Part shown: one piece after another, positions 2,814 to 64,000 of the stretch
Layout of the letters: each line of letters starts with the position of its first letter
Numbering within the stretch: the first letter of the stretch is position 1
From: Ranitomeya imitator
Lineage: Eukaryota
Reading direction: 5' to 3'
Assembly: GCF_032444005.1 (NCBI RefSeq)
Contig: NC_091283.1
Span: 833,776,001 to 833,840,000 of the forward strand
DNA length: 64,000 nucleotides
Notes under the pieces: generated by a model
Told to the model about the DNA's origin: nothing
Databases searched by the model: none
What the model saw: only the letters and a program-made list of their open reading frames with translations
Made by a program: the position numbers and the translations under genes

Positions 2814-3807
2814 TTATAGTAGTTATATTCCTGTGCACTGGGAGCAGTATTATAGTGGCAGATATACACGGCACCATTATTTGAGTGTCTTCGTACTTCT
2901 AACAATACATTTTTTTTCTATCCTGCTGGGACCGCCAGAGGTTGGGGCTTTAAAGGGAATCTGTCACCCCCTTGGATATTTAAGCTATTACTATGGGCAT
3001 ACAGGTCATAGAATTGCTAATACTGTCTTAAGGTACCTTCACACTAAGCGACGCTGCAGCAATTTAGACAATGATGTCGATCGCTGCAGCGTCGCTGTTT
3101 GGTCGCTGGAGAGCTGTCACACAGACAGCTCTCCAGCGACCAACGATCCGAAGCCCCCGGGTAACCAGGGTAAACATTGGGTTACTAAGTGCAGGGCCGC
3201 GCTTAGTAACCCGATGTTTACCCTGGTTACCATCCTAAAAGTAAAAAAAAAACAAACGCTTCATACTTACCTTCCGCTGTCTGTCCCCGGCGCTCTGCTT
3301 CTCTGTACTGGCTGTGAGCACAGCGGTGACGTCACCGCTCTGCTTTCCGGCCGCTGTGCTCACAGTGAGTGCAGGAAAAATGATAATTACTTACGGGTAA
3401 TTTGATTTTCCAGAACCATGACAGCACCGTACGTGAGAGATGGCATCCACCCCCAGGAACAGGAAACCTGTAGCAGAGATATAAGAATGGGGCGGCCCCT
3501 CTCTCCTCAGTTTGTTTCAGAGTATGGAAGATGACCGCTTTGTTAGTACACAGTTATGTATTCTATTTACATTGTACAAGTTTCTATTAGTTTTTTATCT
3601 ATATACATATTTCCTTACACTTATTTACTTATATATAATAAGTTTTTTTTTTTTTTTTTTTTGTGAATCACACAACCATCACCAAGATAGGGCGGGAATT
3701 AATGCGGTGCTGTCATGGTTCTGGAAAATCAGATTACCCGTAAGTAATTATCATTTTTTCCCTTCACCATGACAGCACCGTACGTGAGAGGAAGAAATAG
3801 AAGACTC

Positions 3808-7727: not shown

Positions 7728-8999
7728 GCAGCGCCGCCGAGCATGGCTGCCCCCCCGCGGACCTCGGCCTCCGGACCGGACTCATCAGAGGGGGTATCCC
7801 TCCGGAGGTAGGAGCTCTGCAACAGGCGTCCACCTGCAGGAACAGGAAACCAAAACTGAGGAGAGAGGGGCCGCCCCATTCTTATATCTCTGCTACAGGT
7901 TTCCTGTTCCTGGGGGCGGATGCCATCTCTCACGTACGGTGCTGTCATGGTGAAGGGAAAAGCACAGCGCCGAGGACAGACAGCGGAAGGTAAGTATGAA
8001 GCGATTGCTTTTTTTACTTTTAGGATGGTAACCAGGGTAAACATCGGGTTACTAAGCGCGGCCCTGCGCTTAGTAACCCGATGTTTACCCTGGTTACCAG
8101 CGAAGACCTCGCTGAATCGGCGTCACACACGCCGATTCAGCGATGTCAGCGGGAGATCCAGCGACCAAAGAAAGTTCTGGCCTTCTAGCCCCGACCAACG
8201 ACATCACAGCAGGATCCTGATCGCCGCTGTGTGTCACACGGAATGATATCGCTAGCCAGGACGCTGCAACGTCACAGATCGCTAGCGATATCGTTTAGTG
8301 TGAAGGTACCTTTACCTGTACGTTCAATAGCTGCAGTCTAATTGTGGAGAAATAGATTTTAAGCGTTTATGCTAATTATTTCTTCCAGGCTCCAGGGCAT
8401 TCAGTGTTTGGCAAAAACCTGCCTCCTGACTTCATTCTAATACCAACCACACAAATGCTACTGTGCAAGTGACTCGCCGATGCAGCAGGATGGAGACACT
8501 GCCCATAGAAGGGACAAGTACCTAGAACAGCGCTGGTGCAGGTGCGGGATTACGGCACCACGAAAGCACGTCACAGGTCAGGGTTACGTGCATGGTAAGA
8601 GGGGGTTATTAAAATGAAGTCAGGAAGCAGAGATTTGTTCCAGGCACCGCACGCCCCGGAGCCTGGGAGAAATTAACACAAGACCCAATTTCTCCACAGC
8701 TAGACTGCAGCTATGGGGCATACAGGTAAGACTATTTTAACCATTTTATTACCTGTATGCCCATATTAACAGCTTAAAAGCATCCAGGGGGTGACAGATT
8801 CCCTTTAAAACCCAGAGATAAGGCCACATGTGTGCACCTCGGCTCCATTCAGGGGTAATAAACCCTTTACCTCCGGTTTGTCTTCTGTAGGGATCTGTGC
8901 TCCCTATAACGTTGTATAATGCAGAACACAGATTGCCTTCTCCTTACACCTGAACAACAATTGCTCTTAATCAGACATCGTCAATATTAAAAATTTACA

Positions 9000-16359: not shown

Positions 16360-19300
16360 ATGGTGGATGTGAAAGATACGCTGCTGTCTATCCTGCCGAC
16401 TATCCGGTTGCCCAGGGCCGGGGACCGAGTACACAAGGATGAGTGTGCCTTCTCCTTCCACACACCGGTATATGTGGTCCTCCCTCCTTTGTGCCTGTGC
16501 TTTGTCACCATCGTTGGTTGTGTCCCCCCCCCCCTGTATGAATATGGGGGGTTCTGGGGTCGCTCAACCCTGTGGGGGCCGTGTAACCCATCATGTCCGC
16601 TGCCCTGTGTGATGGAGCTTCATCGCCTTCTTTTATTGGTTGGTGAGGCTCAGGACATGTGACATGTAAAGTCCTTGGGGGTCCGACCACTGGGACCACC
16701 ATGCAAGAATCCGGACCCCCTGTCCATGTGATCACGGGGGTCCGAAAGTCCCATATGGGTCTGTAAGAGCAATGGCCGCTCATGCTCAGCACGCCCGCTC
16801 CATTCACAATCCGGACCCCCTGTCCATGTGATCACGGGGGTCCGAAAGTCCCGTATGGGTCTGTAAGAGCAATGGTCACACATGTGCAGCACACCTGCTC
16901 CATTCACAATCCGGACCCCCTGTCCATGTGATCACCGGGGTCCGAAAGTCCCATATGGGTCTGTAAGAGCAATGGTCGCACATGTGCAGCACGCCCGCTC
17001 CATTCACAATCTGGGCCCCCCTGTCCATGTGATCACGGGGGTCCGAAAGTCCCGTATGGGTCTGTAAGAGCAATGGTCGCACATGTGCAGCACACCTGCT
17101 CCATTCACAATCCGGACCCCCCTGTCCATGTGATCACCGGGGTCCGAAAGTCCCATATGGGTCTGTAAGAGCAATGGTCGCACATGTGCAGCACGCCCGC
17201 TCCATTCACAATCCGGGCCCCCCTGTCCATGTGATCACGGGGGTCCGAAAGTCCCATATGGGTCTGTAAGAGCAATGGTCGCACATGTGCAGCACGCCCG
17301 CTCCATTCACAATCCGGACCCCCCTGTCCATGTGATCACCGGGGCCCGAAAGTCCCGTATGGGTCTGTAAGAGCAATGGCCGCACATGCGCAGCACGCCC
17401 GCTCCATTCACAATCCGGGCCCCCCTGTCCATGTGATCACGGGGGTCCGAAAGTCCCGTATGGGTCTGTAAGAGCAATGGCCGCACATGCGCAGCACGCC
17501 CGCTCCATTCACAATCCGGTCCCCCCTGTCCATGTGATCACGGGGGTCCGAAAGTCCCGTATGGGTCTGTAAGAGCAATGGTCGCACATGTGCAGCACGC
17601 CCGCTCCATTCACAATCTGGGCCCCCCTGTCCATGTGATCACGGGGGTCCGAAAGTCCCGTATGGGTCTGTAAGAGCAATGGTCGCACATGTGCAGCACG
17701 CCCGCTCCATTCACAATCTGGGCCCCCCTGTCCATGTGATCACGGGGGTCCGAAAGTCCCATATGGGTCTGTAAGAGCAATGGTCGCGTGTGCGCAGCAC
17801 AATCATTCCATTCACAATCCGGACCCCTCTGTCCATGTGATCACGGGGGTCCGAAAGTCCCGTATGGGTCTGTAAGAGCAATGGTTGCACATGTGCAGCA
17901 CGCCCGCTCCATTCACAATCCAGACCCCCCTGTCCATGTGATCACCGGGGTCCGAAAGTCCCATATGGGTCTGTAAGAGCAATGGTCGCACATGCTCAGC
18001 ACGCCCGCTCCATTCACAATCTGGGCCCCCCTGTCCATGTGATCACGGGGGTCCGAAAGTCCCGTATGGGTCTGTAAGAGCAATGGTCGCACATGTGCAG
18101 CACGCCCGCTCCATTCACAATCTGGGCCCCCCTGTCCATGTGATCACGGGGGTCCGAAAGTCCCGTATGGGTCTGTAAGAGCAATGGTCGCACATGTGCA
18201 GCACGCCCGCTCCATTCACAATCCAGGCCCCCCTGTCCATGTGATCACGGGGGTCCGAAAGTCCCGTATGGGTCTGTAAGAGCAATGGTCGCACATGTGC
18301 AGCACGCCCGCTCCATTCACAATCTGGGCCCCCCTGTCCATGTGATCACGGGGGTCCGAAAGTCCCGTATGGGTCTGTAAGAGCAATGGTCGCACATGTG
18401 CAGCACGCCCGCTCCATTCACAATCTGGGCCCCCCTGTCCATGTGATCACGGGGGTCCGAAAGTCCCATATGGGTCTGTAAGAGCAATGGTCGCGTGTGC
18501 GCAGCACAATCATTCCATTCACAATCCGGACCCCTCTGTCCATGTGATCACGGGGGTCCGAAAGTCCCATATGGGTCTATAAGCGCAGTGGTCGCACATG
18601 TGCAGCACACCCGCTCCATTCACAATCCAGGCCCCCCTGTCCATGTGATCACGGGGGTCCGAAAGTCCCGTATGGGTCTGTAAGAGCAATGGTCGCACAT
18701 GTGCAGCACGCCCGCTCCATTCACAATCTGGGCCCCCCTGTCCATGTGATCACGGGGGTCCGAAAGTCCCATATGGGTCTGTAAGAGCAATGGTCGCGTG
18801 TGCGCAGCACAATCATTCCATTCACAATCCGGACCCCTCTGTCCATGTGATCACGGGGGTCCGAAAGTCCCATATGGGTCTATAAGCGCAGTGGTCGCAC
18901 ATGTGCAGCACGCCCGCTCCATTCACAATCCGGACCCCTCCGTCCATGTGATCACCGGGGTCCGAAAGTCCCATATGGGTCTGTAAGAGCAATGGTCGCA
19001 CATGTGCAGCACGCCCGCTCCATTCACAATCCGGACCCCTCTGTATGTCTGAGTGCACCTTTCTAGAAACAGGTATTGTCCACACACCAGCACCATGATT
19101 GCTGAGAATACAACAGTCGTGTGATGGGATGTCAGAAAACTAGATAAAAGGGGCACGGGGAGGTGAATATGGTGTTTTCTGAAACTTTTTTTTTTTTTAG
19201 TAGGTTAGTTTTTTTAGTAGGTTGTTTTTCTCTGCAGGGAAACTTGCAAAATTATCTGCCCAAATTGTTGCAGATTTATTGTGTTTTCCATTCCCAATCC

Positions 19301-31100: not shown

Positions 31101-34100
31101 TCCTATGCTCAGGCTTCCTCTGCCGATCTCGGTGTTGGCGGCACATATTCACACATCGGGGTTCTGATTGTATGTTCTGTATCTTTTTTTTTTTTTTTTT
31201 ACTCGCAGGATACGAGCTGTTCGCATTCGTCAGTCACATGGGAACGTCCACCATGTGCGGTCACTACGTATGTCATATAAAGAAAGATGGACGGTGAGAT
31301 CTTCGTGTGCTCGTCACTTAGATGCGACTGACGTCACCTCATCCTCGTTGTCACCTCATCCTTGTCTTTGTATCTAGAGCCCAATCTTCTTTCTATACTT
31401 TACTATCCAGAATGAACGTTATCTGTTCAGGGGTGTAACCCCTGCATGCCATAAGCAGATAGCCTCATGCATTGTGCTCGCCTTCGTCCCCAGTGCGTTG
31501 TGCTCGCCTTCGTCCCCAGTGCGTTGTGCTCGCCTTCGTCCCCAGTGCGTTGTGCTCGCCATCGTCCCCGGTGCGTTGTGCTCGCCTTCGTCCCCGGTGC
31601 GTTGTGCTCGCCTTCGTCCCCGGTGCGTTGTGCTCGCCTTCGTCCCCGGTGCGTTGTGCTCGCCTTCGTCCCCGGTGCGTTGTGCTCGCCTTCGTCCCCG
31701 GTGCGTTGTGCTCGCCTTCGTCCCCGGTGCGTTGTGCTCGCCTTCGTCCCCGGTGCGTTGTGCTCGCCTTCGTCCCCGGTGCGTTGTGCTCGCCTTCGTC
31801 CCCGGTGCGTTGTGCTCGCCTTCGTCCCCGGTGCGTTGTGCTCGCCTTCGTCCCCGGTGCGTTGTGCTCGCCTTCGTCCCCGGTGCGTTGTGCTCGCCTT
31901 CGTCCCCGGTGCGTTGTGCTCGCCTTCGTCCCCGGTGCGTTGTGCTCGCCTTCGTCCCCGGTGCGTTGTGCTCGCCTTCGTCCCCGGTGCGTTGTGCTCG
32001 CCTTCGTCCCCGGTGCGTTGTGCTCGCCTTCGTCCCCGGTGCGTTGTGCTCGCCTTCGTCCCCGGTGCGTTGTGCTCGCCTTCGTCCCCGGTGCGTTGTG
32101 CTCGCCTTCGTCCCCGGTGCGTTGTGCTCGCCTTCGTCCCCGGTGCGTTGTGCTCGCCTTCGTCCCCGGTGCGTTGTGCTCGCCTTCGTCCCCGGTGCGT
32201 TGTGCTCGCCTTCGTCCCCGGTGCGTTGTGCTCGCCTTCGTCCCCGGTGCGTTGTGCTCGCCTTCGTCCCCGGTGCGTTGTGCTCGCCTTCGTCCCCGGT
32301 GCGTTGTGCTCGCCTTCGTCCCCGGTGCGTTGTGCTCGCCTTCGTCCCCGGTGCGTTGTGCTCGCCTTCGTCCCCGGTGCGTTGTGCTCGCCTTCGTCCC
32401 CGGTGCGTTGTGCTCGCCTTCGTCCCCGGTGCGTTGTGCTCGCCTTCGTCCCCGGTGCGTTGTGCTCGCCTTCGTCCCCGGTGCGTTGTGCTCGCCTTCG
32501 TCCCCGGTGCGTTGTGCTCGCCTTCGTCCCCGGTGCGTTGTGCTCGCCTTCGTCCCCGGTGCGTTGTGCTCGCCTTCGTCCCCGGTGCGTTGTGCTCGCC
32601 TTCGTCCCCGGTGCGTTGTGCTCGCCTTCGTCCCCGGTGCGTTGTGCTCGCCTTCGTCCCCGGTGCGTTGTGCTCGCCTTCGTCCCCGGTGCGTTGTGCT
32701 CGCCTTCGTCCCCGGTGCGTTGTGCTCGCCTTCGTCCCCGGTGCGTTGTGCTCGCCTTCGTCCCCGGTGCGTTGTGCTCGCCTTCGTCCCCGGTGCGTTG
32801 TGCTCGCCTTCGTCCCCGGTGCGTTGTGCTCGCCTTCGTCCCCGGTGCGTTGTGCTCGCCTTCGTCCCCGGTGCGTTGTGCTCGCCTTCGTCCCCGGTGC
32901 GTTGTGCTCGCCTTCGTCCCCGGTGCGTTGTGCTCGCCTTCGTCCCCGGTGCGTTGTGCTCGCCTTCGTCCCCGGTGCGTTGTGCTCGCCTTCGTCCCCG
33001 GTGCGTTGTGCTCGCCTTCGTCCCCGGTGCGTTGTGCTCGCCTTCGTCCCCGGTGCGTTGTGCTCGCCTTCGTCCCCGGTGCGTTGTGCTCGCCTTCGTC
33101 CCCGGTGCGTTGTGCTCGCCTTCGTCCCCGGTGCGTTGTGCTCGCCTTCGTCCCCGGTGCGTTGTGCTCGCCTTCGTCCCCGGTGCGTTGTGCTCGCCTT
33201 CGTCCCCGGTGCGTTGTGCTCGCCTTCGTCCCCGGTGCGTTGTGCTCGCCTTCGTCCCCGGTGCGTTGTGCTCGCCTTCGTCCCCGGTGCGTTGTGCTCG
33301 CCTTCGTCCCCGGTGCGTTGTGCTCGCCTTCGTCCCCGGTGCGTTGTGCTCGCCTTCGTCCCCGGTGCGTTGTGCTCGCCTTCGTCCCCGGTGCGTTGTG
33401 CTCGCCTTCGTCCCCGGTGCGTTGTGCTCGCCTTCGTCCCCGGTGCGTTGTGCTCGCCTTCGTCCCCGGTGCGTTGTGCTCGCCTTCGTCCCCGGTGCGT
33501 TGTGCTCGCCTTCGTCCCCGGTGCGTTGTGCTCGCCTTCGTCCCCGGTGCGTTGTGCTCGCCTTCGTCCCCGGTGCGTTGTGCTCGCCTTCGTCCCCGGT
33601 GCGTTGTGCTCGCCTTCGTCCCCGGTGCGTTGTGCTCGCCTTCGTCCCCGGTGCGTTGTGCTCGCCTTCGTCCCCGGTGCGTTGTGCTCGCCTTCGTCCC
33701 CGGTGCGTTGTGCTCGCCTTCGTCCCCGGTGCGTTGTGCTCGCCTTCGTCCCCGGTGCGTTGTGCTCGCCTTCGTCCCCGGTGCGTTGTGCTCGCCTTCG
33801 TCCCCGGTGCGTTGTGCTCGCCTTCGTCCCCGGTGCGTTGTGCTCGCCTTCGTCCCCGGTGCGTTGTGCTCGCCTTCGTCCCCGGTGCGTTGTGCTCGCC
33901 TTCGTCCCCGGTGCGTTGTGCTCGCCTTCGTCCCCGGTGCGTTGTGCTCGCCTTCGTCCCCGGTGCGTTGTGCTCGCCTTCGTCCCCGGTGCGTTGTGCT
34001 CGCCTTCGTCCCCGGTGCGTTGTGCTCGCCTTCGTCCCCGGTGCGTTGTGCTCGCCTTCGTCCCCGGTGCGTTGTGCTCGCCTTCGTCCCCGGTGCGTTG

Positions 34101-37100
34101 TGCTCGCCTTCGTCCCCGGTGCGTTGTGCTCGCCTTCGTCCCCGGTGCGTTGTGCTCGCCTTCGTCCCCGGTGCGTTGTGCTCGCCTTCGTCCCCGGTGC
34201 GTTGTGCTCGCCTTCGTCCCCGGTGCGTTGTGCTCGCCTTCGTCCCCGGTGCGTTGTGCTCGCCTTCGTCCCCGGTGCGTTGTGCTCGCCTTCGTCCCCG
34301 GTGCGTTGTGCTCGCCTTCGTCCCCGGTGCGTTGTGCTCGCCTTCGTCCCCGGTGCGTTGTGCTCGCCTTCGTCCCCGGTGCGTTGTGCTCGCCTTCGTC
34401 CCCGGTGCGTTGTGCTCGCCTTCGTCCCCGGTGCGTTGTGCTCGCCTTCGTCCCCGGTGCGTTGTGCTCGCCTTCGTCCCCGGTGCGTTGTGCTCGCCTT
34501 CGTCCCCGGTGCGTTGTGCTCGCCTTCGTCCCCGGTGCGTTGTGCTCGCCTTCGTCCCCGGTGCGTTGTGCTCGCCTTCGTCCCCGGTGCGTTGTGCTCG
34601 CCTTCGTCCCCGGTGCGTTGTGCTCGCCTTCGTCCCCGGTGCGTTGTGCTCGCCTTCGTCCCCGGTGCGTTGTGCTCGCCTTCGTCCCCGGTGCGTTGTG
34701 CTCGCCTTCGTCCCCGGTGCGTTGTGCTCGCCTTCGTCCCCGGTGCGTTGTGCTCGCCTTCGTCCCCGGTGCGTTGTGCTCGCCTTCGTCCCCGGTGCGT
34801 TGTGCTCGCCTTCGTCCCCGGTGCGTTGTGCTCGCCTTCGTCCCCGGTGCGTTGTGCTCGCCTTCGTCCCCGGTGCGTTGTGCTCGCCTTCGTCCCCGGT
34901 GCGTTGTGCTCGCCTTCGTCCCCGGTGCGTTGTGCTCGCCTTCGTCCCCGGTGCGTTGTGCTCGCCTTCGTCCCCGGTGCGTTGTGCTCGCCTTCGTCCC
35001 CGGTGCGTTGTGCTCGCCTTCGTCCCCGGTGCGTTGTGCTCGCCTTCGTCCCCGGTGCGTTGTGCTCGCCTTCGTCCCCGGTGCGTTGTGCTCGCCTTCG
35101 TCCCCGGTGCGTTGTGCTCGCCTTCGTCCCCGGTGCGTTGTGCTCGCCTTCGTCCCCGGTGCGTTGTGCTCGCCTTCGTCCCCGGTGCGTTGTGCTCGCC
35201 TTCGTCCCCGGTGCGTTGTGCTCGCCTTCGTCCCCGGTGCGTTGTGCTCGCCTTCGTCCCCGGTGCGTTGTGCTCGCCTTCGTCCCCGGTGCGTTGTGCT
35301 CGCCTTCGTCCCCGGTGCGTTGTGCTCGCCTTCGTCCCCGGTGCGTTGTGCTCGCCTTCGTCCCCGGTGCGTTGTGCTCGCCTTCGTCCCCGGTGCGTTG
35401 TGCTCGCCTTCGTCCCCGGTGCGTTGTGCTCGCCTTCGTCCCCGGTGCGTTGTGCTCGCCTTCGTCCCCGGTGCGTTGTGCTCGCCTTCGTCCCCGGTGC
35501 GTTGTGCTCGCCTTCGTCCCCGGTGCGTTGTGCTCGCCTTCGTCCCCGGTGCGTTGTGCTCGCCTTCGTCCCCGGTGCGTTGTGCTCGCCTTCGTCCCCG
35601 GTGCGTTGTGCTCGCCTTCGTCCCCGGTGCGTTGTGCTCGCCTTCGTCCCCGGTGCGTTGTGCTCGCCTTCGTCCCCGGTGCGTTGTGCTCGCCTTCGTC
35701 CCCGGTGCGTTGTGCTCGCCTTCGTCCCCGGTGCGTTGTGCTCGCCTTCGTCCCCGGTGCGTTGTGCTCGCCTTCGTCCCCGGTGCGTTGTGCTCGCCTT
35801 CGTCCCCGGTGCGTTGTGCTCGCCTTCGTCCCCGGTGCGTTGTGCTCGCCTTCGTCCCCGGTGCGTTGTGCTCGCCTTCGTCCCCGGTGCGTTGTGCTCG
35901 CCTTCGTCCCCGGTGCGTTGTGCTCGCCTTCGTCCCCGGTGCGTTGTGCTCGCCTTCGTCCCCGGTGCGTTGTGCTCGCCTTCGTCCCCGGTGCGTTGTG
36001 CTCGCCTTCGTCCCCGGTGCGTTGTGCTCGCCTTCGTCCCCGGTGCGTTGTGCTCGCCTTCGTCCCCGGTGCGTTGTGCTCGCCTTCGTCCCCGGTGCGT
36101 TGTGCTCGCCTTCGTCCCCGGTGCGTTGTGCTCGCCTTCGTCCCCGGTGCGTTGTGCTCGCCTTCGTCCCCGGTGCGTTGTGCTCGCCTTCGTCCCCGGT
36201 GCGTTGTGCTCGCCTTCGTCCCCGGTGCGTTGTGCTCGCCTTCGTCCCCGGTGCGTTGTGCTCGCCTTCGTCCCCGGTGCGTTGTGCTCGCCTTCGTCCC
36301 CGGTGCGTTGTGCTCGCCTTCGTCCCCGGTGCGTTGTGCTCGCCTTCGTCCCCGGTGCGTTGTGCTCGCCTTCGTCCCCGGTGCGTTGTGCTCGCCTCCG
36401 TCCCCGGTGCGTTGTGCTCGCCTCCGTCCCCGGTGCGTTGTGCTCGCCTCCGTCCCCGGTGCGTTGTGCTCGCCTCCGTCCCCGGTGCGTTGTGCTCGCC
36501 TCCGTCCCCGGTGCGTTGTGCTCGCCTCCGTCCCCGGTGCGTTGTGCTCGCCTCCGTCCCCGGTGCGTTGTGCTCGCCTCCGTCCCCGGTGCGTTGTGCT
36601 CGCCTTCGTCCCCGGTGCGTTGTGCTCGCCTTCGTCCCCGGTGCGTTGTGCTCGCCTTCGTCCCCGGTGCGTTGTGCTCGCCTTCGTCCCCGGTGCGTTG
36701 TGCTCGCCTTCGTCCCCGGTGCGTTGTGCTCGCCTTCGTCCCCGGTGCGTTGTGCTCGCCTTCGTCCCCGGTGCGTTGTGCTCGCCTTCGTCCCCGGTGC
36801 GTTGTGCTCGCCTTCGTCCCCGGTGCGTTGTGCTCGCCTTCGTCCCCAGTGCGTTGTGCTCGCCTTCGTCCCCAGTGCGTTGTGCTCGCCTTCAGAAGCA
36901 TGGGCCTACATTTTACAGCTTTATTATCCTTTTTTTTAATTGCCGGAGGGGTGTTATTATAGATTGAGATTGCTTAAGGCCCATGTGGGATCTCTATACC
37001 CATATAACCTCTCTCCTCTTCCTCGTCTGACTGACGCTTCTATTTTCTGTTGCTTCATGATGATGGCTTCCTTTCCTGCATACTGCCCTTACTTTTTGCC

Positions 37101-37688
37101 TCCATCCTCTCTGCTGCTAACAACTGCATTCGCCGGCCCCTTCGGTCCTGACCTCCCTCCCCGCCTCGGTCCTGGCCTCCCTCCCCGCCTCGGTCCTGGC
37201 CTCCCTCCCCGCCTCGGTCCTGGCCTCCCTCCCCTCCTCGGTCCTGGCCTCCCTCCCCGCCTCGGTCCTGGCCTCCCTCCCCGCCTCGGTCCTGGCCTCC
37301 CTCCCCGCCTCGGTCCTGGCCTCCCTCCCCGCCTCGGTCCTGGCCTCCCTCCCCGCCTCGGTCCTGGCCTCCCTCCCCGCCTCGGTCCTGGCCTCCCTCC
37401 CCGCCTCGGTCCTGGCCTCCCTCCCCGCCTCGGTCCTGGCCTCCCTCCCCGCCTCGGTCCTGGCCTCCCTCCCCGCCTCGGTCCTGGCCTCCCTCCCCGC
37501 CTCGGTCCTGGCCTCCCTCCCCGCCTCGGTCCTGGCCTCCTCCCTCCTGTTCCCTTTTGTTTCTGACTATTGTTCTTGTTTTTCTCTTCTGCAGGTGGGT
37601 GATCTACAATGACCAGAAGGTCTGCGCATCTGAGAAGCCTCCAAAAGATCTTGGTTATATTTACTTCTACCAGCGTGTGCAGAGCTAA
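16360..37688 (+). CDS. USP5: Ubiquitin carboxyl-terminal hydrolase 5 (isopeptidase T), 854 aa (831 aa short form); exons 16360-16467, 19764-19889, 20534-20600, 21587-21720, 21864-22009, 22721-22905, 23446-23540, 23621-23814, 24119-24190, 24297-24372, 24711-24836, 24913-25066, 25150-25324, 26188-26276, 27360-27551 (alt end 27482), 28541-28684, 30079-30224, 30379-30535, 31209-31293, 37595-37688
   Basis: 20 GT-AG exons join in frame (2565 nt); ZnF-UBP ([23 protein letters not shown]), Cys box [20 protein letters not shown], two UBA MGF motifs, His box GHY, YNDQKV. Confidence 0.97.
16709..19043. repeat. About 101-bp minisatellite, about 23 copies, USP5 intron 1
   Basis: Unit atccggaccccctgtccatgtgatcacgggggtccgaaagtcccgtatgggtctgtaagagcaatggtcgcacatgtgcagcacgcccgctccattcaca. 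Confidence 0.95.
20011..20239. repeat. 24-bp minisatellite (ctcgcaccttgcccagagtgaccg), about 9.5 copies, USP5 intron 2
   Basis: Near-perfect tandem copies. Confidence 0.95.
25541..25669. repeat. 24-bp minisatellite (gcactggtggggcgctgtttcccc), about 5 copies, USP5 intron 13
   Basis: Tandem copies. Confidence 0.9.
28975..29880. mobile_element. AT-rich non-autonomous DNA transposon fragment (TTAA/CCC end, piggyBac-like)
   Basis: Starts ttaaccccttcatgac; related sequence appears in reverse orientation at about 26590-27290. Confidence 0.45.
31468..36893. repeat. 26-bp GC-rich satellite (gtgcgttgtgctcgccttcgtccccg), about 208 copies, USP5 last intron
   Basis: Nearly invariant tandem array; the consensus unit has no A. 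Confidence 0.99.
37139..37541. repeat. 24-bp minisatellite (cctcggtcctggcctccctccccg), about 17 copies
   Basis: Tandem copies ending about 50 nt before the USP5 exon 20 acceptor. Confidence 0.95.
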
Positions 37689-45948: not shown

Positions 45949-47148
45949 ATACTTACTGCAACAAAACTGCAAGTAGGGACTTTCTTGCATAGAGTTTTCC
46001 CATGCAGTTCTTCCCTATCGCCTACCATTGGATCTTTGGGACCTTAATGGTCCTGGGGGGTCTTGCAGTAGACTCATTTTGATCCGGACAGACTTTAGTG
46101 TAATGAAAGGTCGCCTTTTTCTCTGTGGTCACTTCATTCAGGCGAGTCTTCGGAGCTAGTTGCTCTGTCCTTTCAGACTCATTTCCTTATTACCATCTAG
46201 GCAAGGTTGTCTTCATGCCGTCCTCGTCCCTTGTTACCAATGTGGTATCGTACTCCCTCTGTTACAAGGGCATCGCTCGTCCCTCGTCTTGTTCGGCACC
46301 AGTCCACATAACGGAACGGGTTCCCCATACTCTGGACCAGGTGAGTGCTCTAAGAAGGTATGTATCGAGGACGGCGTCCTTCCGAAGGTTGGACACTTTA
46401 TTTGCGCTTCCCGACGGTCACATGAAGGCTTCCTGATGGTTACAGCAAGAGTTTAGCCACTTCATCAGCCATGTTAGCCTGGTGGATTCGTTACACCACC
46501 CAGGGGTCCTTCCGCGTCAGGTCAGCCTATCCCGGAAGGGATCAGGGCACTCCCCACTTCGTCGATAGTGGCTTCTTGGGCCATTAGGCACCAGGTGTTG
46601 GCAGAGCAGGCCGACACGGTTGCGGTTTCATCCAGTCCGCACACGTTCTTGAAGCACTACAATTTTCACACCCAGACTTCCACAGATGTGAGTCTGGGCA
46701 GGTGGACTCTGCAGGCTGCGGTAACGCACTCTTAGGTAGCGGTTACGCAGGGCCTGATCTGATGTTGTCCCCACCCAGGGATACCCACATATTAATTTAA
46801 TAGTCAACTTTCATAAAATAGCCTGTCTCCTGGCATACTGAAAATATACGTCTGGCATAATTAAGATAAAATGCTGTGTCGTGACAACGTTCACATCAGG
46901 AGGTGAGCAGAGATGCAGAGATAGAGTATTTTAGGCGTGCTCGAAAAAAAAATGATCTAGTTCCTGAGGCTCCATGTCTCGTGTCTGTTTGACAGCCGCA
47001 ACGCATGCAGGGATTCCCTGTCAGCGGATATTTACGCACGGGAGCAGGGGCCGCGTAGCCGCTTATACCCCAATAATAACCGTGCTCTTCTTGTAGAGAT
47101 CCCATGCGCTAATCATGGGAAATCTAGTGTAGAAGTCGCATGCATTAA

Positions 47149-47476
47149 AGGGACACTGTCACCTGAATTTGGAGGGAACAATCTTCAGCCATGGAGGCGG
47201 GGTTTTGTGGTTTTTGATTCACCCTTTCCTTACCCGCTGGCTGCATGCTGGCTGCAATATTGGATTGAAGTTCATTTTCTGTCCTCCGTAGTACATGCCT
47301 GCACAAGACAATCTTGCCTTGTGCAGGCGTGTACTATGGAGGAAAGAGAATGAACTTCAATCCAATATTGCAGCCAGCATGCAGCCAGCGGGTAAGGAAA
47401 GGGTGAATCAAAAACCACAAAACCCCGCCTCCATGGCTGAAGATTGTTCCCTCCAAATTCAGGTGACAGTGTCCCT
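47149..47476. mobile_element. Almost fully palindromic T2/Kolobok-type MITE
   Basis: TTAA at 47145-47148 and 47477-47480; long near-perfect inverted arms starting agggacactgtcacctgaatttggagggaac. Confidence 0.9.
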
Positions 47477-47744
47477 TTAAATTACTGCTGCACGGGGCCC
47501 TATGAATAAGGGGGGCCCACACCACGGGAATTAGACCTTGCCTCACTAGATTTGCTGGAGTACTTACAGGAGCTCTTTGATGGTGACTGTACTGGTGAAC
47601 AGGGGCCAATGCTTCCATACAGGGAGAACTAGGGAAACAAAGACTTTCTGGCTCCATGTAAATAATAATTAGCGATTTTCAGGTCCTAAAGAACATTGTA
47701 AGCGCAGATTTCCCCTCTCAAATGGCAGAGAAATAATTTGCCCA

Positions 47745-56545: not shown

Positions 56546-59032
56546 TGAGGCGCTACATTAAGGTCACAGCGGCTGATTAATAAACTAATGGAGAGCGAGT
56601 AATGGGAGCCGGACTTATTAGGACGGAGCACGTCGCAGCATCCTCATGGGGGATACATGTATGCCAGGTGTTTCATAGACCATGAATTGGGTACAGCCAT
56701 TGTTTAGCAACGCCCCTTTAAGAGTCTGTGCCCCATTGGTTGCAATGTTGTCTTGCAGCTTCAGGGCTCTGGGCTTGAATCTAACCAAGGGCAACATCCA
56801 CACAGGGGCAGGGTCTTTTTGGGGGGTCTTAATTGCCTAGAGACTGAGCATTTCTGTACTGTTCTGCAGAAAAGGATTGCACTATAGAAATTAAAAAATA
56901 TTGTCCAGTTTTTGCAAAAAAAAAATCCCTTTTCTGATTTGCAATAGCTTTATTATGTGAATTGCTAATGTTTTCAAAATCTCTGCTTGCTGTCATTGGA
57001 CAAAAAAACCCTGTTTTATATAAAGAGGGACACCCCCCCCCTTCTCCTGGCTGTGGGACGGAAACCCTAAACCCCCCCCGGACTCCTGGCCACGGGACGG
57101 ACACCCCCCTCTCCTGGCCGTGGGACGGACCCCCCCTTCTTCTGGCCACGGGACGGGGACCACCGGTATCGCAGTCCTGCATTCTCACATACACAGCACA
57201 GATTTCCATCCTCTGGAGATTAGCAATAACATTTCTTATTCTATGATCACAGCAGCGGTCCTGGAAATCCTGCACAATAAGTACAGAAACTGTCAGAGCA
57301 TTGGGCGTCTTTTCTCTATACAACCATTCGGCTTTATTTCAGGAGATTGGAAGACCTGATTGATGCAATAAGAAGCAGATCAATGGAATCATTAATTACC
57401 CTTTAGAGAGAATGATTGAGCCGCTCCTGTAGCTGCAGAGCTCCATTTGTCCATTACCTGCCCATCACTCCACTGAACTGTAACTTTATCGACAACTTGT
57501 TGCTGCCACTAGGTGGCAGTATATATGCAGCTCTTGCTTGTGTATAGAGCGCCACCTTGTGGTGCCATCAAGCATAAAGTAACTTTACAAGGGAAGAGGA
57601 CAATGCCATGTATTAAAAGAAAATGTGATCTAATGGGTAATGTTTCTCCTTGTGGAGAGCGACAAGCCAGGCCTGGCATGTCAGAGTGAGGAGACTTATA
57701 AGCCATGCGTTCTCCTCTGGGAATACTTAAAAATAAATAAATGGGGCACTGTTCATAGAGAACTCTCCTTGGACCAGTAAGGGCACGTTTAGGGTACAGA
57801 TAGGGCTCCTGTGCATGGTGCGCTGTCACCCCCTGCTGGTGATGTGCAGCCTGCAAGCACCATCCTTGTATAAATGATTCATTATACTTAGTGCAGACCC
57901 TTAATGAACAATTACAATGTGACATTGCATCTTTTCCCTCCATGAAACCTTACATTTTACATGTGGTCGCAGTTCTCTTCCTTATTTCACTTTCACACGT
58001 GTCCATAGGAGTTAGTTAGCATGTAAAGTACATTGGCAAACAGCACCCCGCACCTCAGCACCCCCCGCATCTCGGCACCCCCCACACCTCTGCTTCCTTC
58101 GAAGCTGGATTTTAGGTCCTCTGGGGGAGACTTGTTTTGCATATGGGTGCACTTCCCCTGCCCACGGCACCTTACTATGGAGTCAGTTGCTCAATGTGCA
58201 GCCATTCGGATGCATCGTGTACTTCTATAGGTGCTGTAGTTAAAGGTGCATTCTCCTTTAAGATCATTAGGGAGTTGCTATTTATGCAATTCTCTAACAG
58301 ACTTCCTTTTTGCTGCAGGAGGTCGGTATAGTTGGATGATCTGATGGCTGCAGCTTCGTACTGGGTTATAATATTGCAAGTCGGGGAAAAAATCTTGTTC
58401 TTGCACATTGTGACGAGGCACCATGCTACCTCCAACCTCGCAGCCGGGGAGCGGACGGCTCCTTGACTGATATTAGTAAGACATGGGACCCTGCGCGGAG
58501 CAGCTGGCCGTGCAGAGGAGCTGGCACCTGTTGTCCCACCTCATGTCACCCCGGTGGATAGGTCAGCGCCGGGAATGTCGGGATAGTTTTACAGTAAACT
58601 TTCCAAACTGTATTTGCAGAAAGTGCAGAAGGCATACAGATCTAGAATTCTCCTTAGTGGGTGAAGATCCAGACTTCTAGAATTCTCCTTATTGTTATCT
58701 TCTATGTCTTTCCCTCTTAAAGGCAAATCTACCGACCTCCGCGTCTGACATACTGCGGCTGATCCACATCCTTCACAATTCAGTTCACCAAGGGTTCATG
58801 CACACACGGTGGATTTGATGCATATTTGCCACAGTAAAATCCATATGTTGCATCCGGATTTGTCACAAATTTCACCCAATGATTTCTAAAGCGGTGAAAC
58901 TGTGACAAAAACCATCAGACTTAACCTGCTGCCGATTTACAAATGAAACGTTGAAAATATCTGGAGAAAAGATGTCGTCAACTTGTCTGCACCGGATTTT
59001 CTGCAAGTAAATTTGTGCAAAAAATTAGAACA

Positions 59033-59828
59033 GGGTACAGCCGGGACCAGCTGCTTCGAAAGCATCACCAAACCAGGGATTCAAGCTTCAGGAGGCTAAT
59101 TTGCATATTCCAGGTGCCTTCTGGGAGAAGCGAAGTCTCCCTAAGCTAGAAGATCGTTGGGTACAGCCGGGACCAGCTGCTTCGAAAGCATCACCAAACC
59201 AGGGATTCAAGCTTCAGGAGGCTAATTTGCATATTCCAGGTGCCTTCTGGGAGAAGCGAAGTCTCCCTAAGCTAGAAGATCGTTGGGTACAGCCGGGACC
59301 AGCTGCTTCGAAAGCATCACCAAACCAGGGATTCAAGCTTCAGGAGGCTAATTTGCATATTCCAGGTGCCTTCTGGGAGAAGCGAAGTCTCTCTAAGCTA
59401 GAAGATCGTTGGGTACAGCCGGGACCAGCTGCTTCGAAAGCATCACCAAACCAGGGATTCAAGCTTCAGGAGGCTAATTTGCATATTCCAGGTGCCTTCT
59501 GGGAGAAGCGAAGTCTCCCTAAGCTAGAAGATCGTTGGGTACAGCCGGGACCAGCTGCTTCGAAAGCATCACCAAACCAGGGATTCAAGCTTCAGGAGGC
59601 TAATTTGCATATTCCAGGTGCCTTCTGGGAGAAGCGAAGTCTCCCTAAGCTAGAAGATCGTTGGGTACAGCCGGGACCAGCTGCTTCGAAAGCATCACCA
59701 AACCAGGGATTCAAGCTTCAGGAGGCTAATTTGCATATTCCAGGTGCCTTCTGGGAGAAGCGAAGTCTCCCTAAGCTAGAAGATCGTTGGGTACAGCCGG
59801 GACCAGCTGCTTCGAAAGCATCACCAAA
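59033..59828 (+). repeat. 126-bp tandem monomers, 6 full copies plus 40 bp, at the CR1 5' end
   Basis: Units start at 59033, 59159, 59285, 59411, 59537, 59663 and 59789; one substitution seen. Confidence 0.97.
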
Positions 59829-59921
59829 TTTTTGCCTGTAGGACATTATTGCAAGAGAGCTTGGCTGAGTAGATTACACAAGAAGGAAAAACACAGCAAG
59901 TCAGCAGGATCTAGGAGCAAC

Positions 59922-60875
59922 ATGGCAGATGTGACAACCTACATGGTGAGCTGCAGCATGTGCTACATGTTCACAGATCGACCAGAAGAAGAATCCAATT
60001 TCACCTGTCAGAAGTGTAGACTAGTGGCCCTTTTAGAAGAAAAGGTGCGGGGTCTGGAAGAAAGAATAGCAACTTTGAAACTCATCAAAGAGAATGAAGA
60101 CTTTCTAGACAGAACAGAAGCATCTCTACTGGTCACAGAAGGTGCAAAAAGTGTCAGAGAACCTCCAAAAGCAGATGAGTGGAAGCATGTGACCAAAAGA
60201 AGCAAGAAGACCATGGAGAAATCACCAACCACACAACTGAAGAACCGATATCAAATCTTTGTAGAGGATGAAGATGGCACACCTAAGAATGAAGCAATAC
60301 CAGCAAGCAAAAAAGAAAAGGGCACACAGCAACAAGTGACAGCAAAAAGTACAGCCAAGAAGCAACGAAGAGTGGTGGTGGTGGGAGACTCACTACTGAG
60401 AGGCACAGAAGCAGCCATCTGCAGACCGGACATAACTGCAAGAGAAGTATGCTGCCTTCCAGGTGCGATGATCAAGGATGTGACCGATAGGATACCAAAG
60501 CTCTTCAGCTCCAAGGACGTCCACCCATTTCTTCTGATACATGTTGGCACCAATGACACGGCAAGGAAGGACCTACCGACAATCTGCAAGGACTTTGAAG
60601 AGTTGGGGAAGAAAGTAAAGGAACTGGATGCACAGGTAGTTTTTTCTTCTATCCTTCCAGTAGATGGGCATGGCACCAGGAGATGGAACAGGATCCTTGA
60701 TGCAAACAACTGGCTAAGACGATGGTGCAGACAACAAGGATTCGGATTCCTGGACCACGGTGTGAATTACTTGTACGATGGACTCCTCGCCAGAGACGGA
60801 CTACACCTCAACAAACCTGGGAAACACACATTCGCCAGAAGACTCGCTACACTCATCAGGAGGGCGTTAAACTAG
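59922..60875 (+). CDS. CR1 ORF1p (317 aa): Cys-rich zinc-binding motif, coiled coil, SGNH/GDSL esterase-like domain
   Basis: CSMCYMF..FTCQKC; VVVGDSLLRG; IHVGTND; DGLHLN. Confidence 0.9.
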   Translation: MADVTTYMVSCSMCYMFTDRPEEESNFTCQKCRLVALLEEKVRGLEERIATLKLIKENEDFLDRTEASLLVTEGAKSVREPPKADEWKHVTKRSKKTMEKSPTTQLKNRYQIFVEDEDGTPKNEAIPASKKEKGTQQQVTAKSTAKKQRRVVVVGDSLLRGTEAAICRPDITAREVCCLPGAMIKDVTDRIPKLFSSKDVHPFLLIHVGTNDTARKDLPTICKDFEELGKKVKELDAQVVFSSILPVDGHGTRRWNRILDANNWLRRWCRQQGFGFLDHGVNYLYDGLLARDGLHLNKPGKHTFARRLATLIRRALN

Positions 60876-63793
60876 AAGAAGAGGGGACGGGAAGAAAAAC
60901 ATTAGACTCGAACAAAGACGACCCAGGAAAACATACTCAGAAGGGAGGTAAGAACATTTCTAAAACAATCCACAGCGAGGAGATTGGAACAAAACAAAAT
61001 CCTCTAAACTGCATGCTCGCAAACGCCAGAAGCCTGACAAACAAGATGGAAGAACTAGAAGCAGAAATATCTACAGGTAACTTTGACATAGTGGGAATAA
61101 CCGAGACATGGTTAGATGAAAGCTATGACTGGGCAGTTAACTTACAGGGTTACAGTCTGTTTAGAAAGGATCGTAAAAATCGGAGAGGAGGAGGGGTTTG
61201 TCTCTATGTAAAGTCTTGTCTAAAGTCCACTTTAAGGGAGGATATTAGCGAAGGGAATGAGGATGTCGAGTCCATATGGGTTGAAATTCATGGAGGGAAA
61301 AATGGTAACAAAATTCTCATTGGGGTCTGTTACAAACCCCCAAATATAACAGAAAGCATGGAAAGTCTACTTCTAAAGCAGATAGATGAAGCTGCAACCC
61401 ATAATGAGGTCCTGGTTATGGGGGACTTTAACTACCCGGATATTAACTGGGAAACAGAAACCTGTGAAACCCATAAAGGCAACAGGTTTCTGCTAATAAC
61501 CAAGAAAAATTATCTTTCACAATTGGTGCAGAATCCAACCAGAGGAGCAGCACTTTTAGACCTAATACTATCTAATAGACCTGACAGAATAACAAATCTG
61601 CAGGTGGTCGGGCATCTAGGAAATAGCGACCACAATATTGTACAGTTTCACCTGTCTTTCACTAGGGGGACTTGTCAGGGAGTCACAAAAACACTGAACT
61701 TTAGGAAGGCAAAGTTTGAACAGCTTAGAGATGCCCTTAATCTGGTAGACTGGGACAATATCCTCAGAAATGAGAATACAGATAATAAATGGGAAATGTT
61801 TAAGAACATCCTAAATAGGCAGTGTAAGCGGTTTATACCTTGTGGGAATAAAAGGACTAGAAATAGGAAAAACCCAATGTGGCTAAACAAAGAAGTAAGA
61901 CAGGCAATTAACAGTAAAAAGAAAGCATTTGCACTACTAAAGCAGGATGGCACCATTGAAGCTCTAAAAAACTATAGGGAGAAAAATACTTTATCTAAAA
62001 AACTAATTAAAGCTGCCAAAAAGGAAACAGAGAAGCACATTGCTAAGGAGAGTAAAACTAATCCCAAACTGTTCTTCAACTATATCAATAGTAAAAGAAT
62101 AAAAACTGAAAATGTAGGCCCCTTAAAAAATAGTGAGGAAAGAATGGTTGTAGATGACGAGGAAAAAGCTAACATATTAAACACCTTCTTCTCCACGGTA
62201 TTCACGGTGGAAAATGAAATGCTAGGTGAAATCCCAAGAAACAATGAAAACCCTATATTAAGAGTCACCAATCTAACCCAAGAAGAGGTGCGAAACCGGC
62301 TAAATAAGATTAAAATAGATAAATCTCCGGGTCCGGATGGCATACACCCACGAGTACTAAGAGAACTAAGTAATGTAATAGATAAACCATTATTTCTTAT
62401 TTTTAGTGACTCTATAGCGACAGGGTCTGTTCCGCAGGACTGGCGCATAGCAAATGTGGTGCCAATATTCAAAAAGGGCTCTAAAAGTGAACCTGGAAAT
62501 TATAGGCCAGTAAGTCTAACCTCTATTGTTGGTAAAATATTTGAAGGGTTTCTGAGGGATGTTATTCTGGATTATCTCAATGAGAATAACTGTTTAACTC
62601 CATATCAGCATGGGTTTATGAGAAATCGCTCCTGTCAAACCAATCTAATCAGTTTTTATGAAGAGGTAAGCTATAGGCTGGACCACGGTGAGTCATTGGA
62701 CGTGGTATATCTCGATTTTTCCAAAGCGTTTGATACCGTGCCGCACAAGAGGTTGGTACACAAAATGAGAATGCTTGGTCTGGGGGAAAATGTGTGTAAA
62801 TGGGTTAGTAACTGGCTTAGTGATAGAAAGCAGAGGGTGGTTATAAATGGTATAGTCTCTAACTGGGTCGCTGTGACCAGTGGGGTACCGCAGGGGTCAG
62901 TATTGGGACCTGTTCTCTTCAACATATTCATTAATGATCTGGTAGAAGGTTTACACAGTAAAATATCGATATTTGCAGATGATACAAAACTATGTAAAGC
63001 AGTTAATACAAGAGAAGATAGTATTCTGCTACAGATGGATCTGGATAAGTTGGAAACTTGGGCTGAAAGGTGGCAGATGAGGTTTAACAATGATAAATGT
63101 AAGGTTATACACATGGGAAGAGGGAATCAATATCACCATTACACACTGAACGGGAAACCACTGGGTAAATCTGACAGGGAGAAGGACTTGGGGATTCTAG
63201 TTAATGATAAACTTACCTGGAGCAGCCAGTGCCAGGCAGCAGCTGCCAAGGCAAACAGGATCATGGGGTGCATTAAAAGAGGTCTGGATACACATGATGA
63301 GAGCATTATACTGCCTCTGTACAAATCCCTAGTTAGACCGCACATGGAGTACTGTGTCCAGTTTTGGGCACCGGTGCTCAGGAAGGATATAATGGAACTA
63401 GAGAGAGTACAAAGGAGGGCAACAAAATTAATAAAGGGGATGGGAGAACTACAATACCCAGATAGATTAGCGAAATTAGGATTATTTAGTCTAGAAAAAA
63501 GACGACTGAGGGGCGATCTAATAACCATGTATAAGTATATAAGGGGACAATACAAATATCTCGCTGAGGATCTGTTTATACCAAGGAAGGTGACGGGCAC
63601 AAGGGGGCATTCTTTGCGTCTGGAGGAGAGAAGGTTTTTCCACCAACATAGAAGAGGATTCTTTACTGTTAGGGCAGTGAGAATCTGGAATTGCTTGCCT
63701 GAGGAGGTGGTGATGGCGAACTCAGTCGAGGGGTTCAAGAGAGGCCTGGATGTCTTCCTGGAGCAGAACAATATTGTATCATACAATTATTAG
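60722..63793 (+). CDS. CR1 ORF2p: apurinic endonuclease plus reverse transcriptase (first ATG at 61013)
   Basis: NARS, GITETWL, MGDFNYP, LDLIL, SDHN; GPDGIHP, YRPVSLTS, YLDFSKAFDTV, GVPQGSVLGP, FADDTKL; no stops or frameshifts. Confidence 0.95.
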   Translation: MVQTTRIRIPGPRCELLVRWTPRQRRTTPQQTWETHIRQKTRYTHQEGVKLEEEGTGRKTLDSNKDDPGKHTQKGGKNISKTIHSEEIGTKQNPLNCMLANARSLTNKMEELEAEISTGNFDIVGITETWLDESYDWAVNLQGYSLFRKDRKNRRGGGVCLYVKSCLKSTLREDISEGNEDVESIWVEIHGGKNGNKILIGVCYKPPNITESMESLLLKQIDEAATHNEVLVMGDFNYPDINWETETCETHKGNRFLLITKKNYLSQLVQNPTRGAALLDLILSNRPDRITNLQVVGHLGNSDHNIVQFHLSFTRGTCQGVTKTLNFRKAKFEQLRDALNLVDWDNILRNENTDNKWEMFKNILNRQCKRFIPCGNKRTRNRKNPMWLNKEVRQAINSKKKAFALLKQDGTIEALKNYREKNTLSKKLIKAAKKETEKHIAKESKTNPKLFFNYINSKRIKTENVGPLKNSEERMVVDDEEKANILNTFFSTVFTVENEMLGEIPRNNENPILRVTNLTQEEVRNRLNKIKIDKSPGPDGIHPRVLRELSNVIDKPLFLIFSDSIATGSVPQDWRIANVVPIFKKGSKSEPGNYRPVSLTSIVGKIFEGFLRDVILDYLNENNCLTPYQHGFMRNRSCQTNLISFYEEVSYRLDHGESLDVVYLDFSKAFDTVPHKRLVHKMRMLGLGENVCKWVSNWLSDRKQRVVINGIVSNWVAVTSGVPQGSVLGPVLFNIFINDLVEGLHSKISIFADDTKLCKAVNTREDSILLQMDLDKLETWAERWQMRFNNDKCKVIHMGRGNQYHHYTLNGKPLGKSDREKDLGILVNDKLTWSSQCQAAAAKANRIMGCIKRGLDTHDESIILPLYKSLVRPHMEYCVQFWAPVLRKDIMELERVQRRATKLIKGMGELQYPDRLAKLGLFSLEKRRLRGDLITMYKYIRGQYKYLAEDLFIPRKVTGTRGHSLRLEERRFFHQHRRGFFTVRAVRIWNCLPEEVVMANSVEGFKRGLDVFLEQNNIVSYNY

Positions 63794-64000
63794 GTTCTGT
63801 AGAAGGACGTAGATCTGGGGATTTATTATGATGGAATATAGGCTGAACTGGATGGACAAATGTCTTTTTTCGGCCTTACTAACTATGTTACTATGTAGAA
63901 CTAAATGTGCACCGTGTGAATTTACCCTTAATTAAAAATATTCTGCAAATACTGGAGTGTTGGCAGAAAAATCCTGCTTTAAAATATGTGCGCATTTGGT

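Follow-up and report, generated by a model that had tools for sequence, protein, structure and literature searches.

Tandem 126-bp units head a CR1-type retrotransposon of Ranitomeya imitator and carry candidate snRNA-type promoter motifs

A CR1-type LINE in the genome of Ranitomeya imitator begins with an array of near-identical 126-bp units, and the evidence from its flanks and from other loci supports the view that this array is a mobilised 5' part of the element, with an architecture similar to that of the L1 elements. The element was found in a window of 64,000 nucleotides (contig NC_091283.1, positions 833,776,001 to 833,840,000), which was analysed over its whole length and to which all coordinates below refer. 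LINEs must carry a promoter within their own RNA, a demand for which the tandem 5' monomers of rodent L1 are the classic solution. To our knowledge, the promoters of the CR1 clade are almost unstudied. We propose that the array consists of retrotransposed promoter cassettes of the snRNA/H1 type, each of which would fire into the next unit, and we put this reading at slightly better than an even chance. The promoter function of the units is predicted from their sequence.

Anatomy of the element and its leader

The first open reading frame of the element, ORF1 (59922-60875, plus strand), encodes 317 amino acids and starts with an ATG at 59922 that has an A at position -3 and a G at position +4. 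A CxxC...CxxC motif of the zinc-knuckle/PHD-like kind expected of CR1 is visible at its N-terminus, and the protein also contains a coiled-coil stretch with a heptad-like pattern and a GDSL/SGNH esterase domain (Lipase_GDSL_2, 1.9e-8, above the Pfam cut-off). ORF2 (60722-63793, plus strand) encodes 1023 amino acids with an apurinic-type endonuclease and a reverse transcriptase in which the FADD motif is present (Pfam Exo_endo_phos, 2.9e-16; RVT_1, 4.9e-34). The two genes overlap by 154 nt in different frames, and both are open. The 3' UTR (63794-63895, plus strand) has no poly(A) and contains a hairpin at about 63840-63876, for which the fold z-score was only -1.8, and a terminal 8-nt repeat, ACTATGTT, present in 1.9 copies at 63882-63896.

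The closest relatives of ORF1 were several proteins of Ranitomeya imitator itself (93-99% identity), next to which came Dendrobates tinctorius (64%), a tegu lizard (63%) and turtles (about 48%), while birds and crocodilians (35-42%) and Hyla (34%) were farther away. In a maximum-likelihood tree of ORF1, the sequence from the window was placed with two dendrobatids and the tegu within the reptile/bird ORF1 group. An atlas search with ORF2 yielded generic endonuclease-reverse transcriptase clusters and did not point to a particular clade. The esterase of ORF1, the endonuclease and reverse transcriptase of ORF2 and the tail with its hairpin and 8-nt repeat bear out the identification as a CR1 LINE made in an earlier note on this DNA and, judged from the sequence, support the assignment, with a tree that was built on ORF1 alone.

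Upstream of the intact ORF1, Tandem Repeats Finder identified an array at 59033-59828 with a period of 126, 6.3 copies and 99% matches. A unit-by-unit comparison resolved it into six full units (59033-59788, plus strand), identical to each other in all six cases except for one C>T substitution at 59392 (unit 3, unit position 108), and a seventh unit (59789-59828, plus strand) that is cut after position 40 and then diverges into a tether. Both methods thus agree with the 6.3 near-identical units that the earlier note had described. The tether is a unique, ATG-free sequence of 93 nt (59829-59921, plus strand) that extends up to the ATG of ORF1. Its first bases, TTTTT at the unit-tether junction (59829-59833), form the only run of four or more T residues in the leader.

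The plus strand of the 896-nt leader (59026-59921) contains no ATG, which upholds the statement in the earlier note that units and tether lack this codon, and the first ATG of the leader and body is that of ORF1 at 59922. The minus strand has two ATGs in each unit and two in the tether. The probability of an ATG-free leader was estimated to 0.016 by shuffles and to 0.11 by a first-order Markov model; because the leader is repetitive, the absence is only modestly unusual. Neither AATAAA nor ATTAAA poly(A) signals were present in the leader. The units did not qualify as CpG islands, with observed to expected CpG ratios of 0.48 for the unit, 0.40 for the body of the element and 0.52 for the flank. 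The Rfam comparison gave no match at the gathering threshold over the whole window and a single chance match for the array at E values up to 10, so the unit is no recognisable RNA gene or SINE head. A reading frame stays open through the array (126 bp being 42 codons), but a coding role was rejected because this frame lacks an ATG, is out of register with ORF1 and has database matches that are chimeric gene models.

Assemblers have difficulty with near-perfect tandem repeats and could in principle have made the length of the array or the perfect identity of its units. We consider such an artefact barely credible here since an array of 800 bp is well within the reach of single long reads, and the gene models of a second R. 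imitator assembly hold matching units. The window contains no N bases and no stretch that we took to be human DNA.

The array at the insertion site and at other loci

The earlier note had placed the array inside a duplicated TAGAAC, and this placement was confirmed. The left copy (59026-59031, plus strand), a putative target-site duplication, lies directly outside the start of the array, with one extra A (59032) before the first unit, and the right copy (63896-63901, plus strand) follows directly after the 3' repeat tail. By a rough estimate, the chance of a 6-mer match at both ends, allowing a slack of 2 nt in either direction, is about 0.6%. The bracket bears on the possibility that the array stands outside the transposed unit, either because it grew locally after the insertion or because the CR1 landed beside a 126-bp satellite. 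Six units that differ by one substitution could indeed be the product of a very recent local duplication, and a duplication of 6 bp is short; CR1 elements often have no clear target duplications. A TAGAAC that lies outside the array, rather than at the junction of array and tether, nevertheless argues against such an origin.

Sequences from elsewhere in the genome argue against it as well. Searching the protein collection with the open frame of the array retrieved gene models on five further R. imitator contigs, one on each, which contain one to 2.7 units as C-terminal exons. In one of them, P0122, two units run straight into the third frame of the tether and end at the stop that is also found in the window, with a unit-tether junction that is 8 nt longer, and the join of unit to tether is therefore present at another locus. 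Two others, P0124 and P0125, have a diverged variant of the unit in common, from which it follows that the units have a history within the species. Elsewhere in the window there was neither another copy of the unit or the element nor an empty-site paralogue. The earlier note had pointed to other genomic copies as the place to look; at least five further contigs of R. imitator have units, and P0122 has the tether join. A metagenome scan with a 25-nt pattern from the unit gave no match, and a metagenome scan for a JGI relative of ORF1, P0006, gave no confirmed locus.

Considering the bracket, the matching unit-to-tether join and the dispersal of the units over other contigs, we find an origin outside the transposed unit improbable. 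A change in the number of units at this locus after the insertion is possible and would be compatible with an array that was retrotransposed with the element.

Motifs of the unit and a model for its transcription

Each of the six full units contains a perfect octamer, ATGCAAAT, on the minus strand at unit positions 67-74 (59099-59106 in the first unit, and every 126 bp thereafter). In agreement with the earlier note, which had reported an octamer in every monomer, each full unit contains one ATTTGCAT, which gives six occurrences. At a distance of 6 bp from the octamer there is a ZNF143/Staf-like core (TCCCANNATGCAYY, one mismatch) on the minus strand at unit positions 81-94 (59113-59126), also in the six full units. 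A box resembling the proximal sequence element (PSE), TCTCCCTAAGCTAGAAGA, follows on the plus strand at unit positions 104-121 (59136-59153), again in the six full units; it is a weak match, agreeing at 11 of the 15 specified positions with a mammalian consensus, from which that of frogs may differ. An initiator-like CCAAA (in CCAAACC) has its A at unit position 38 and is also present in the seventh unit. A motif scan found no TATA box on either strand of the unit, and no snRNA 3' box was detected in the element.

To calibrate these matches, we used as background 53.1 kb of the window on both strands, with the satellite and the element left out; the letters of the Staf motif were taken from PMC7154149 and from the H1 oligonucleotides in PMC1942083. 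The octamer occurred once in this background and the Staf core, at the stringency applied, not at all, which makes the octamer-Staf pair the solid part of the motif reading. Per 126 bp, the background contained 0.07 PSE matches of equal quality and 2.1 initiator matches, which makes the latter uninformative. Taken alone, the PSE-like and initiator matches are weak indications of function, and the motif reading as a whole is post hoc. The earlier note had suggested that the array may be driven by POU/Oct factors in the germline or early embryo. Every full unit does have an octamer, which does not stand alone, however, but is accompanied by the ZNF143/Staf core and the weak PSE-like box. With the Staf core only 6 bp away and a PSE-like box downstream, a cassette of the snRNA type would be a better description than a POU-only element.

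The layout resembles that of the promoter of human H1 RNA (RPPH1). The minimal H1 promoter consists of ATTTGCAT, 11 nt, TTCTGGGAA, 1 nt, TCACCATAAACGTGAAAT, 19 nt and TTATAA (PMC1942083), and the frog unit of ATTTGCAT, 12 nt, TTCTGGGAG, 9 nt and the PSE-like box, with no TATA box. Order and orientation are equal in the two, with ATTTGCAT separated by 11 nt in H1 and 12 nt in the frog from TTCTGGGA, and then the PSE, and all sites are within about 100 bp in both. The frog unit differs in the absence of the TATA box, in a gap between Staf site and PSE that is 8 nt longer, and in the weakness of its PSE match. It also differs in being tandemly repeated and in sitting on a retrotransposon, and its start site and polymerase are predictions.

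The H1 promoter spans no more than 100 bp with all its elements, its octamer occupying -97 to -90 (PMC7949045). With position 38 (an A) of the following unit as the reference point, the frog octamer is at -97/-90, the Staf core at -83/-70 and the PSE-like box at -60/-43. If transcription started at position 38, the PSE-like box would fall inside the range of 40-70 bp upstream of the start that has been given for PSEs (PMC9652321). The last unit is cut 2 nt past this predicted start (position 40 versus 38), and about 8 bases later in P0122. Because of this cut point, the array can be interpreted as the head-to-tail duplication of an external cassette whose end coincides with its own start. The predicted start gains no support from the 5' end of the copy in the window since the array begins at unit position 1, the first unit base being located 37 nt upstream of the predicted start.

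An octamer, Staf site and PSE in this arrangement match the type 3 promoter of H1, and the units could therefore be taken for RNA polymerase III (type 3) or other small-RNA genes, in which case an RNA of the array only would end at the TTTTT of the junction, where the single T run of at least four residues in the leader is located. Against this, no position in the unit has a TATA box, and it is the TATA box that decides the use of Pol III at such promoters, Pol II being used in its absence (PMC1790723, PMC3499247). A 99-bp H1 core from which the TATA box is missing is specific for Pol II and drives a luciferase mRNA (PMC7949045). With no Rfam family matched, apart from the one chance hit, we judge small-RNA genes to be very improbable.

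The reading that we favour is hence one of Pol II cassettes. The element would belong to a young and probably active CR1 family of Ranitomeya, of which the array is a part and not a flanking satellite. Each unit would be a compact enhancer-promoter cassette with an octamer, a ZNF143/Staf site and a PSE-like box but no TATA box. A single copy of such a cassette could not travel in the RNA because the promoter is upstream of its own start. In a tandem array, the cassette of unit k would direct RNA polymerase II to a start about 40-70 bp further on, in unit k+1, with initiation predicted near position 38 of that unit. The transcript would carry the downstream cassettes, the AUG-free leader and both ORFs, and any start within the array would give a leader free of AUG. 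Every round of retrotransposition would cost roughly one unit, and since each cycle would have this cost, the loss would have to be made good by a gain of units through unequal recombination, slippage or template switching.

Several observations count against the promoter model, namely the weak PSE, the start of the window copy at unit position 1, the lack of a CpG island and the absence of the 3' box. To these may be added a limit on elongation, as snRNA-type Pol II promoters have been reported not to support long-range elongation (PMC3337830). The array might then have been retrotransposed with the element as a passenger, a minisatellite of the 5' UTR, with the promoter situated in the tether or at the start of ORF1, an internal promoter as in other LINEs of the Jockey superfamily, and with factor sites that are captured relics or due to chance. 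Tandem repeats are known to arise from the untranslated regions of transposable elements (PMC9659126). Units with no CpG enrichment, a weak PSE match beside an uninformative initiator match, and a 5' end that is off the predicted start would all be in line with a passenger. A perfect octamer 6 bp from a Staf core with a single mismatch, in an H1-like layout, is on the other hand very unlikely to have arisen by chance. The sense strand of the unit, with no ATG, poly(A) signals or T runs, is in keeping with selection for a leader that is transcribed, a constraint that a passenger repeat would face as well. On balance, we think it rather unlikely that the array is a passenger.

The cassette reading can be extended to an evolutionary proposal, which we offer tentatively and which may well prove wrong: that a CR1 element took over a compact external promoter of the snRNA/H1 type and made it portable by tandem repetition, thereby arriving at a second, independent version of the L1 monomer solution. 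The promoter machinery recruited in such a takeover would be one with very high activity in the oocytes and early embryos of amphibians, a suggestion that we hold just as tentatively.

Relation to known promoters and retrotransposons

An L1-like architecture in a CR1 element would show that the monomer solution has evolved repeatedly. If the units are truly snRNA-type cassettes, they would further show how a promoter that acts only from upstream becomes heritable for a retrotransposon, and, at about 126 bp, they would offer a small Pol II promoter module from a vertebrate as well as a handle on CR1 activity in the very large dendrobatid genomes. There is also a consequence for annotation since such arrays have already been drawn into chimeric R. 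imitator gene models.

The CR1 elements of birds, turtles, crocodilians and lizards likewise have an ORF1 with a zinc knuckle and an esterase, an ORF2 with an endonuclease and a reverse transcriptase, and a 3' end with a hairpin and an 8-nt repeat in place of poly(A). The tandem-unit 5' end sets the frog element apart. The earlier note knew of no CR1 with tandem monomers, and in the searchable papers we likewise found no description of tandem 5' units in CR1, be it of birds, turtles, crocodilians or lizards.

The monomers of mouse and rat L1 (A, Tf and Gf) are the closest parallel in layout. They are likewise tandem 5' units followed by a unique tether and ORF1, and in mouse L1 the order is monomers, a cut unit, the tether and a first ATG that is that of ORF1 (PMC5381506). 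The number of L1 units differs between copies (PMC5381506, PMC9022269, PMC6454616). The frog element belongs to the CR1 and not the L1 clade, its units are 126 bp as compared to about 200 bp, and they do not form CpG islands, whereas the L1 monomers are CpG-rich. The motif content of octamer, Staf and PSE-like sites is that of the frog units, and promoter activity has been demonstrated for L1 but is predicted for the frog. The convergence with L1 that the earlier note had put forward is thus a fair description of the architecture, and of the architecture only.

Two further systems share one aspect each with the proposed mechanism. Satellite 2 of newts is an amphibian tandem repeat with a snRNA-type Pol II promoter in every unit (Coats et al. 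1994, as cited in PMC2220036). As described there, it is non-coding, a satellite or retrozyme-like sequence with a hammerhead, while the frog array is the head of a protein-coding LINE. In the HeT-A and TART elements of Drosophila, the promoter is upstream of the transcript that it serves, and a head-to-tail neighbour is needed. In these telomeric arrays, an entire element plays the part of the neighbour, whereas in the frog it would be a 126-bp unit within one and the same element.

Array units and their occurrence in gene models

The tandem array of 126-bp units at the 5' end of the CR1 element contains a sole substitution, a C to T change at 59392 (position 108 of unit 3). It hits the TCTCC core of that unit's PSE-like box, a candidate promoter element. 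Since this is one substitution event only, we draw no inference from its location in the box.

On other contigs of R. imitator, 126-bp units form the terminal exons of five gene models (P0121-P0125) for unrelated proteins, including a GPCR and a bHLH protein, and these unit-derived exons are entered at TTCCAG|G within the unit. The models are probably annotation chimeras, while genuine splicing into 126-bp arrays is a possible alternative.

Other repeats in the window

A GC-rich satellite of 26-bp units (31468-36893) spans 5.4 kb and contains about 209 copies with 99% identity; a 24-bp array (37142-37544) lies beside it. A 101-bp tandem repeat (16708-19044) is present in 23 copies with 93% identity.

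Two near-perfect palindromes were also identified, one with arms of 167 nt that are 97% identical and separated by a 2 nt spacer (47145-47480), the other with arms of 155 nt that are 98% identical and without a spacer (2138-2447). Inverted repeats of 90-108 nt with 95-98% identity (3160-3513 and 7853-8098) flank a segment of about 4.3-4.8 kb and may represent the ends of a DNA transposon.

Relationships of the CR1 ORF1

ORF1 (59922-60875) and ORF2 share 154 nt (60722-60875), which are read in different frames. We inferred a tree from ORF1 alone, with a thinly sampled set of proteins that included P0001, P0005, P0006, P0008 and P0086. In this tree, the only other frog match, from Hyla, was placed far off beside a shark sequence. 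The dendrobatid ORF1 clustered with an ORF1 from the tegu lizard Salvator merianae and the JGI protein P0006 (support 98/97), and this cluster was surrounded by amniote CR1 ORF1s. As judged from these sequences, the grouping of the dendrobatid and tegu proteins could be due either to old lineage sorting or to horizontal transfer.
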